Assembly (NCBI GenBank): GCA_965637545.1
Contig: OZ281498.1
Span: forward strand, 10,354,001-10,418,000
DNA from: Phallusia mammillata
Lineage: Eukaryota
Length of the DNA: 64,000 nt
Direction: 5' to 3'
Positions 19,701 to 22,700 of this stretch are shown here, piece by piece (position 1 is the stretch's first letter; each line of letters opens with the position of its first letter). A model generated the notes under the pieces. The model was not told where the DNA came from and ran no database searches. It saw only the letters and a program-made list of their open reading frames with translations. Both the position numbers and the translations under genes were made by a program.

Positions 19701-22700
19701 TACAGGGTGAGCGTTGTAGGACAATCGTGCCCCCGCGAGAACGTTTGATTCATATAATTCATGAGGACAAAACACTCTTGTGCTGGGCCTTAACCTGGAA
19801 CTAAATGTGTCAAGCTTTGAGGGTATTGTGTAAGTAAGGCAAAATTGGGGGCATTTGGTATTGGTGTGTTTGGGGTATTTGTTTTCTTTAAAATCCAAAG
19901 GGGTTATAATAACATTAAAGATTTTGCCGTAGTAAAACCGATACATGTTGATGGTTGCATTGATCGCTGTGCACTTTATTGCTCATATATAGATCAACAA
20001 CAATCCAATGGCCTTATTAGATGCACAAATGACCTGCATGATATTACCCTTATAATACCGGACGTTACACATGAGTTGAACTGCCAATAAAGGCAAAAGT
20101 GCAAGCCCTAGCGTGAGTCTTTCACACTGCGCCATCAGTCAGGAAAACTGATCCACTTGTTTACATGGTGAGGGCTATGCACAGTTGTTTTGGCTCTGCA
20201 CCCTGCGTCATGTATTGAAGCTAATTGATGTTAAAATTGATGACATTACCGGTTGCCTAAAAGCACTTCGTCTCCTTGCTCGACAATTTTTTCTCTCTCC
20301 TCCGTATACGTGCAAAAACCGACGCTCTCATCCAGCGAACGCCGGACAGGAGAATACAACTGATTGACAACTGTCTGTGGCATTGACGACTCGCTATCGG
20401 ATGACACTACGCTATATATACGATCCGGAGAATTTTCGCTATCATCGTGTACGGATTTGTCGTTTGCGGACAACTGGGGACGAAATTCTGGTCGACGGAA
20501 GGAAATTCTCTCGTAGTGGGGTTCGGATTCAGGTTCGAAAGTCGGCGTAATGCCAAACACGTCCGACACGTCAGTGCTTCGCATGGAATCAACGTCATCA
20601 TCACCAATACTGTCTAATGGCGGACGGGATGTTCGTCGAGGTGAAAGCTTGTAGGAGATAAACGACTTTTGTTGCTTTAAAGTCAAACCCGCTGCTATGA
20701 TGCTATTACTGCTGCCGAAGTCGGTTTCAGAACAAGGGACCTGGTCTCCGCTGTCGCCAGACTGAAGACTGCAAACTCCTATCGAGTCCTTGGAGTCGCC
20801 CCGGCTTAACTTGTTTCTCTTCAGCTTGCGTTTAAACTTAGAAACGAGCTTTAAACCTGGTTTACCGTTTTCCATTGTAGTTTTGCGCTGGTTTACAGGC
20901 AAGTTATGCGCAAACATGTAGGGATCAGTCAGTGGTGTTTGATTTCCGTGTCTATTGTGGGCATCGATACTGCAGTTTGAGTTGCGGCTCACGTTTTGCG
21001 GCAAATTACTGCCGTTGACCGTGTAACGAGCATCGGTTTGCATGTAACCTTCACCCGTTAAAGGTCGCACCGCCTTCGCACCATTCATTTTTGTAGACTT
21101 ATCACTGTCAATGTCAGTTTTGTCTTCCTGTTTGTCTTCTAATCTGCTGTCAGATTCACAGAGAACTTTATCTACTGCTGTTTCCTTGTTGTCTGCTGCG
21201 CAATTATCAGTACTGTTGTCTGTTGTTTGATTTGGTACTGGCGCTTGGCTTGGCAGTGATGCATCTTCGAATGAACAAACGCTCTTCGTCGGCTTCCGCA
21301 CAACGGCGTATACAGGCTGGAATTTGTCACTGCTTGTCTGATTCACAACTAGATCCGCATTCTGGTTGCTGCTGCTTGCTGGCTGTTGTGCATGACTAGA
21401 GGTTTCCATTGAAACTCTACCTGGTGATTCGCACCCTTCTCTGTGTGTGCTAAAAGGTTGTGAAGTCTTGGGCACCGAGGATTTACATTTGCATGTATCA
21501 GCACTTCGTGTTGCAAGTAAGGCCTTTACAACGGTGCACATTTTAGTTTGAAGCTGGTCGTGCATCTCCACCATAGCGCGTTCCATCTTCTGCATCTTCA
21601 GTTCGCTTTCAGCAACCCGCGATTGATTTTCTCTTACACACATCACTAGCGCCCTCAGCATATGTGCGTCAACTTCAATCCTCTCACCACCGCCGTTAGG
21701 TGCGCCAGAGCGCTTGGTAGATGGAACACGAGCGTGGTGCGCCATCTTGGGGCTACCTTCGACTTCGCTTGCCCTCCCGCTGTCGTGAATGTCAAGTTCG
21801 CTGCCGAAGTCGCTGTAGCCACTAGTTGCAGGCGAGGGCAACTCGTCGTGGTTGCTGCGACTTTTCTTGTTTCTGTGTTGTTGGTATTCCTCAAAAAGAA
21901 CTAAGGTTTTGTGCTGTTGTCCTCTCATCTCAAACTCCATATCAAAGCAAAGCGTTCGTGCGCTTTCAGAAATGTTTCTTTTGTTGTTACAGATACTGAT
22001 CAGAAAATATATCACTTGAAAAGGCACAAATGCATGGTTTAAACGATTATGCAAGTAGAAGCACACTAACAAGACTGCATAAATTCAACAAACCCTTATT
22101 TTTGGTGACCTACTCACTATCAATGCTAAACAAAAGCAACAATAATTAAATTATAACTAAGGCAATGCCTGGCAAATCATCATACTTCTAAAGTCTGAAC
22201 AGCAATTAACCAATGCCTACAAACCAGTTTCTGACTGTTGTTTCGGCTAAGCTGAGCAATTTTAAGTCAGTTAACGGAGAAGGCTAAGGGTCTACAGTAG
22301 CCCCCCATAAAAACGCCTTTCTCCACTGCAGAGATACTGTTTACGCAAGACATGTAAACGAGCGGTAAGCTGTCTTAAACCCGGCGAACACAAGCAGCGG
22401 ACGAGCAGCGGCATGTACACAAGCCGTAGCATGAGATAAAACCTTGGGAACACATCCGCTTGTTAAGTTAACAAAACCGCACTAAACGAGCCCACGGCCA
22501 CAAAAAGCGCATCGCCCCCCGTTCCGCAAAGTAATGACTCAGAGCTGGGGAGTTTAGGTGAACACATTGTCGTTGCTCAAAGAAGGACGCTAAAGCGGAA
22601 AAGAAAATAAACACTCAGGCGTAAGGAGCATACACCGTTGTCGTATCGCGTATCAAACATGGGAATCGAAGAGGTCGATTTTCTCATGATGTTCCCGATT

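Follow-up and report, generated by a model that had tools for sequence, protein, structure and literature searches.

A 608-codon open frame lies within the FAK gene of Phallusia mammillata, and its position raises the question of how it is used: whether it is coding at all and, if so, whether it belongs to full-length FAK, to a shorter product of the same gene or to a gene of its own. The frame runs on the minus strand from 22072 to a TAA at 20246-20248 of the 64-kb stretch of DNA that was analysed (hereafter the window; in junctions a caret marks the splice point) and sits inside the large post-kinase intron of the FAK gene, which is read from the same strand. Pfam places PK_Tyr_Ser-Thr exons 5' of it (e.g. 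39463-39230 and 38233-38033, minus strand) and three Focal_AT exons 3' of it (7812-6307, minus strand). The last kinase exon ends at 36938 (36938-36970, minus strand, AG^GTTTGT), and the exon which follows the intron, at 19380-19449 on the minus strand, is referred to here as the shared exon. Two further features of the window lie away from the open frame: a run of 140 N (assembly gap or mask) at 44816-44955, in an intron among the kinase exons, and reverse transcriptase ORFs at 3443-5392 on the plus strand (Pfam RVT_1, E 7.5e-9; YADD motif), which are probably a non-LTR retrotransposon lying on the opposite strand and downstream of the last FAT exon.

The classic natural inhibitor of FAK is FRNK, known from vertebrates, and full-text literature searches for an invertebrate FRNK counterpart returned no description of one, Ciona being named once, in a phylogeny. 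An earlier note on the same DNA had read the segment 21995-20250 as one exon (exon B) of 1746 nt with phase 2 at both ends (AG^T and CG^GTAATG), which is correct by sequence, and had offered two uses for it, either as a cassette or as the coding start of a FRNK-like protein. The second of these fits all of the evidence presented here, whereas the cassette is opposed both by an RNA-like contig and by stops upstream of the start codon in other loci. We consider it probable that exon B is a conserved coding alternative first exon of FAK, at the start of a kinase-less FRNK-like transcript. The structure of that transcript is the part of this reading which we hold with high confidence; the functional picture, which is built on motifs and structure prediction, is tentative.

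Conservation of exon B across loci

A word-based protein search with exon B returned a 568-aa orthologue, P0001 (54% identity by BLASTP and approximately 60% in the alignment), together with a protein of Clavelina lepadiformis, P0002, and a profile search by HMMER, run over 1.84 billion representatives, gave nine relatives of 568-877 aa and no others. Compared with the nearest orthologue exon B has a dN of 0.34, a dS saturated at approximately 2.2 and a dN/dS of approximately 0.15. The orthologues are found at the same position of FAK in at least seven other loci, one of them from the ascidian Clavelina. The order of the ORF, the shared exon ([VYF]ILDD...PPPK), exon C, an exon encoding PSRPGF and the Focal_AT exons is present in five loci (L002, L003, L007, L008 and L009), with parts of this order (ORF, shared exon, exon C, PSRPGF exon, FAT) in a further three (L001, L004 and L006). 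Judged by its conservation, exon B is real coding sequence. A chance ORF is ruled out by conservation in nine other loci together with the dN/dS, and a transposon ORF by the single syntenic position in every locus and the lack of excess depth in a DNA run (X5).

The two ends of the exon are conserved in different ways. At the 3' end each of the nine loci checked has a phase-2 GT donor closing the ORF, for which the shared exon carries the matching phase-2 acceptor; in Phallusia this donor GT lies at 20248-20249 on the minus strand (CG^GTAATG), and the TAA at 20246-20248 belongs to it. The stop which closes the ORF is usually of this kind, being the TAA of a GTAA donor in five loci. At the 5' end all ten aligned proteins start from a common Met, which in Phallusia is the ATG at 21938-21940 on the minus strand (gatATGg), and nucleotide conservation with L001, the locus of the nearest orthologue, begins approximately 20 nt upstream of it. 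In eight of the nine other loci an in-frame stop stands 2-13 codons 5' of the conserved Met with no phase-2 AG in between, and the frame is open upstream of the Met only in the Phallusia window and in L004, each of which has candidate phase-2 acceptors. The conserved use of exon B to which this comparison points would be a start at the Met, the reading of some 560-880 residues and a splice into the frame of the FAK C-terminal region.

Exon B transcripts and their splicing

In order to follow transcripts through this part of the gene we compared four public runs (X1, X2, X3 and X5) as contigs over 19000-24900. X5 is DNA and covers every base, and X1-X3 were taken as RNA from their exon-only cover, with none at 22152-23333. 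Beyond the exons these three cover a high-copy repeat near 23500-23700 and, in X1 alone, introns at a faint level. A tRNA-Phe(GAA)-like sequence is found within 23487-23727 (ARAGORN; Rfam tRNA, 36 bits), in the intron 5' of exon B, and the segment adjoining it reaches a depth of approximately 297,000 in the DNA run compared with approximately 344 around it and is also present in the RNA-like runs; the 23487-23727 sequence resembles a tRNA-derived SINE.

The main FAK mRNA was recovered from X1, X2 and X3, in all of which ...CGTCTCAG at 36938 is joined directly onto 19449 (QQRL^S VILEDF), and its contigs also join 19380 to 10351. Exon B is seen in an 1801-nt contig of X1 which lies on 20250-22021 of the minus strand and whose last 29 letters resume at 19449. 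The joint skips 800 nt and has GT..AG ends on the minus strand (CT..AC on the plus strand), so the donor proposed at 20250 is in use and the shared exon has two entries, one from 36938 for the main mRNA and one from 20250 for transcripts with exon B. The contig sets a minimum extent for the exon, as its 5' limit at 22021 is the end of the contig and not a mapped transcription start. Judged by contig depth, which is a rough guide, transcripts with exon B would make up a sizeable minority in X1 and be rare in X2 and X3.

Where these transcripts go after the shared exon decides whether the product would carry the FAT domain. Loose ends of contigs at the shared exon (19452 and 19380) map to 36941-36970 and 10323-10351. 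The X1 contig of this exon is 100 nt long and bounded by the two junction points, and its sole assembled exit is to 10351, towards the proline-rich and FAT exons. Cover in X1 is zero at 19000-19379, immediately 3' of the shared exon. With one exit and a bare intron behind it, exon B transcripts would therefore leave towards 10351. It is nonetheless conceivable that they enter the shared exon and then end early, or at some other 3' end, without FAT, as a separate gene which borrows the exon. Exon B and FAT are linked by no contig, and the annotation of Clavelina, in which the FAK locus is split into separate gene models (L002 10001-13464 and 17715-20668), has P0002 as a model in which the orthologue of exon B is followed by the shared exon and by a terminal exon that is short and odd, apart from the next model, which starts at the orthologue of exon C and holds Focal_AT. 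The short terminal exon of P0002 could be an alternative 3' end or the product of a split annotation. A second word-based search, with the Clavelina protein as query, for isoforms joining exon B to the kinase or to FAT returned the query alone. Automatic annotation, however, often breaks genes at internal start exons, and such exons would explain why the FAK locus has been divided automatically into several genes, as in Clavelina. Set against an early end are also the single assembled exit and the bare sequence downstream of 19380 within the region compared, and the phase of the donor, which is conserved in all loci and is relevant only if the frame downstream is read. We regard an early end as unlikely and retain the route to FAT as the preferred reading.

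At the 5' end the earlier note had placed an acceptor at 21995, from the AG at 21996-21997 on the minus strand, which would make exon B a frame-preserving cassette, adding 582 residues to full-length FAK between its kinase and its C-terminal region. The sequence of Phallusia taken by itself permits this, the frame being open from 21995, both ends being in phase 2 as in the QQRL^S intron and a pyrimidine-rich stretch lying ahead of the AG. The X1 contig, however, is colinear with the genome for 26 nt beyond 21995, to 22021, and crosses the proposed acceptor with no branch, loose end or foreign letters. A branch would be expected there if the kinase exon were spliced to it, and as X1 has none the acceptor is unsupported; nor does any contig of the three RNA-like runs X1-X3 contain a 36938>21995 joint. 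The AG is also unconserved, aligning to TA in L001, and the cassette is impossible in eight of nine other loci, where in-frame stops lie just 5' of the Met; conservation begins at the Met itself. The use of exon B as a cassette is accordingly very unlikely. Spliced-leader trans-splicing at 21995 was ruled out on the same contig, which leaves room for rare use at most.

That the contig runs unbranched through 21995, that stops stand 5' of the Met in eight of nine loci and that the proteins align from the Met together argue for exon B as a first exon. The likeliest start codon is the ATG at 21940, which is the first ATG of the X1 contig, and a second in-frame ATG follows at 21926-21928 on the minus strand. 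The contigs show no true start, and there is room for an unseen upstream non-coding exon or for a rare cassette form. An alignment of the 400 nt 5' of the Met from four loci, made in search of a conserved promoter block, showed no informative conservation. On the minus strand at 22094-22105, 73-84 nt beyond the 5' limit of the RNA contig, the sequence CCAAAAATAAGG forms an A/T-rich CC...GG element with eight A/T compared with six in a CArG box, and may serve as a TATA-like or promoter element.

A standalone gene without introns of its own, lying within the FAK intron and ending at the TAA at 20246 by intron retention, is the least probable of the readings considered and one to which we give very little weight. 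The ORF does have a Met and a stop of its own, and low-level contigs of X1 lie in the downstream intron at 20011-20210 and 19506-19735, but 20211-20249 is uncovered in X1, the stop is merely that of the GTAA donor in five loci, and donor and phase alike are conserved. The earlier note had named read-through to the TAA at 20246 as the outcome contrary to its proposal; the main contig is instead spliced at 20250.

Predicted structure and conserved motifs of the exon B protein

Database comparisons of the exon B protein gave no match in Pfam for the ORF, a best E of 0.92 in a PDB profile search and structural look-alikes in the ESM Atlas with scores all of 0.80 or lower. Two thirds of its residues are S, T, N, Q, D, E, K, R, P or G. 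AF2, run as a monomer on a three-sequence alignment, produced a single confident helix over residues 92-147 counted from ATG 21940 (21500-21667, minus strand), with pLDDT above 90 over approximately residues 91-130 and below 50 in the rest of the protein, and the unique region is thus predicted to be disordered apart from this 56-residue helix. In the best heptad register core hydrophobics make up 61% of a/d positions compared with 21% at the other positions, and the ten-species alignment shows the helix to be conserved as VLRALLxYVRExRxRL...ME. The long amphipathic helix is therefore a candidate coiled coil and may pair; of the coiled coil predicted in the earlier note the helix and its heptad pattern are borne out by these results, and self-association remains a prediction.

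Outside the helix the ten-species alignment shows conservation as islands amid change, and the motifs previously listed for Phallusia (DSGRAS at 21784-21767, the basic patch, YAVV, YERI, YSVV and YSPV) are all present. The first island is PPSPATSG(Y)S (PPSPATSG motif at 21812-21841, minus strand), in which P35, S36 and P37 are invariant in ten species. The second contains the DSGRAS sequence (21767-21784, minus strand), which fits DSGxxS; in the form HDSGR(A/V)SE.E.SPK it is kept in six of ten species and lost in the P0004/5/6/8 group. This motif stands in a region of pLDDT below 50, and its chance expectation, estimated from composition, is approximately 0.05 per protein. Further islands are KFK(R/K)KLK followed by S(K/R)DS, which corresponds to the basic patch at 20810-20839 on the minus strand with its conserved core K-F/L-K-(R/K)-K-(L/F)-K, and LDS.GD..DS.RSTD.S.

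Tyrosine motifs form a class of their own. Exon B holds three Y[AS]xV motifs where shuffles give 0.15 expected (P = 0.0002). One island, P-(L/V)-Y-A-x-V-(K/R/N)-K, has Y, A, V and K invariant in all ten species and includes the YAVVRK of Phallusia (21293-21310, minus strand), and a second tyrosine, (L/H/R)Y.R, is conserved in most species. The motif Y-A-x-V-(K/R)-K is also common to exon B and to two other exons of the same gene, exons A and C, being found in the 50419-50421 region, at 21293-21310 (PVYAVVRK) and at approximately 11000-11025, with the form Y-A-R-V-(K/R)-K close to the beginning of exon A and within exon C. It may be a docking site shared by the three exons, and as pY-A-x-V resembles the preference of Csk-type SH2 domains there is a lead as to what such a candidate site might bind. 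The similarity between exons A and B does not extend beyond short shared motifs, with a best E of 0.09 by BLASTP.

A possible long FRNK-like product of FAK

These observations can be assembled into the following scheme. A promoter in the post-kinase intron would start transcription slightly upstream of 22021, and translation from ATG 21940 would give approximately 564 unique residues followed by the FAK C-terminal region, the exon being spliced from 20250 to 19449 of the shared exon in phase 2, which keeps the frame, with 10351 as the assembled next step. The product would consist of the unique region, the proline-rich linker of FAK and the FAT domain, and would be without FERM and without the kinase. 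By analogy with FRNK the FAT domain would bring it to focal adhesions, where it would occupy FAT-binding sites and compete with full-length FAK.

The unique head may add properties of its own to such a product. Its helix could pair as a coiled coil, its DSGxxS-type candidate phosphodegron could subject it to regulated turnover in most lineages, P-L-Y-A-x-V-K-K is a putative phosphotyrosine docking site, and the basic KFKRKLK patch could bind membrane lipids or serve as a nuclear signal. The dimerising, degron-controlled inhibitor of FAK proposed in the earlier note would be compatible with this, as a tentative function suggested by motif conservation and the predicted helix.

If the reading is true, a conserved internal start exon in tunicate FAK would mean that kinase-less FAK products are older than vertebrates, and exon B would be a natural variant in which a large regulatory region is part of the inhibitor of FAK itself. 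Handles on the recruitment and turnover of the isoform would then be offered by the invariant short motifs. In its most general form, which we put forward as a possibility that is somewhat more doubtful than the functional picture above, tunicates may have a conserved long FRNK made from an internal post-kinase promoter, with a head of 560-880 residues acting as a regulated scaffold (coiled coil, phosphodegron and Y-A-x-V-K-K docking), and separate expression of the FAK C-terminus may have existed before vertebrates and been elaborated into modular isoforms.

Comparison with known systems

The nearest parallel to exon B is FRNK of vertebrates, the transcript of which likewise begins within the FAK gene, 3' of the kinase exons, and continues by splicing into the common C-terminal exons. 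FRNK is without FERM and kinase and keeps the proline-rich region and FAT, and the same would hold for the exon B product. The two differ in the leader, as the FRNK leader exon is said, in work ascribed to Nolan et al. 1999, to be non-coding, with translation beginning at a Met inside the FAK frame, whereas the exon B leader would encode approximately 564 residues under purifying selection. Their positions may differ as well. Residue 676 of human FAK we take, on our own count, to be the L of KAQL. FRNK, which is without the N-terminal and catalytic domains and inhibits FAK, has its promoter in chicken and mouse between exons 22 and 23, approximately 1 kb from the FRNK start codon, and Table 1 of the same study would put the end of exon 23 at residue 676 (Corsi et al. 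2006, PMC1570463). With exon 23 ending at ...KAQL, the FRNK promoter would lie one intron upstream of the vertebrate counterpart (KAQL^STIL) of the intron that holds exon B, although the exon numbering of that study is ambiguous in itself; the earlier note had taken the two introns to be the same.

The alternative first exon of PRNK adds a few unique N-terminal residues, a handful compared with the 564-residue region and its conserved motifs in exon B. PRNK (PYK2-related non-kinase) itself is a C-terminal isoform, without the kinase, from a gene of the FAK family, and exons 13, 14, 16 and 31 of vertebrate FAK are short internal cassettes reported only in vertebrates (PMC1570463). Those cassettes are alternative coding sequence, as is exon B, but in the contigs exon B is not used as one.

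Within the same FAK gene exons A and C are, like exon B, internal exons of the start type, and other species have orthologues of them. A product begun at exon A, which precedes the Tyr397-type exon, would retain the kinase that the exon B product would be without, and one begun at exon C, 3' of the shared exon, would be a short FAT-only form. The shared-exon contig of X1 halts 29 letters into the 10351 exon, which suggests that the 10351 exon is reached by another route as well in that sample; this would be expected were exon C a start exon too. Set beside these systems the exon B transcript would, by analogy, work like FRNK and PRNK and yet be no plain member of their class, as its leader appears to encode a large conserved region.
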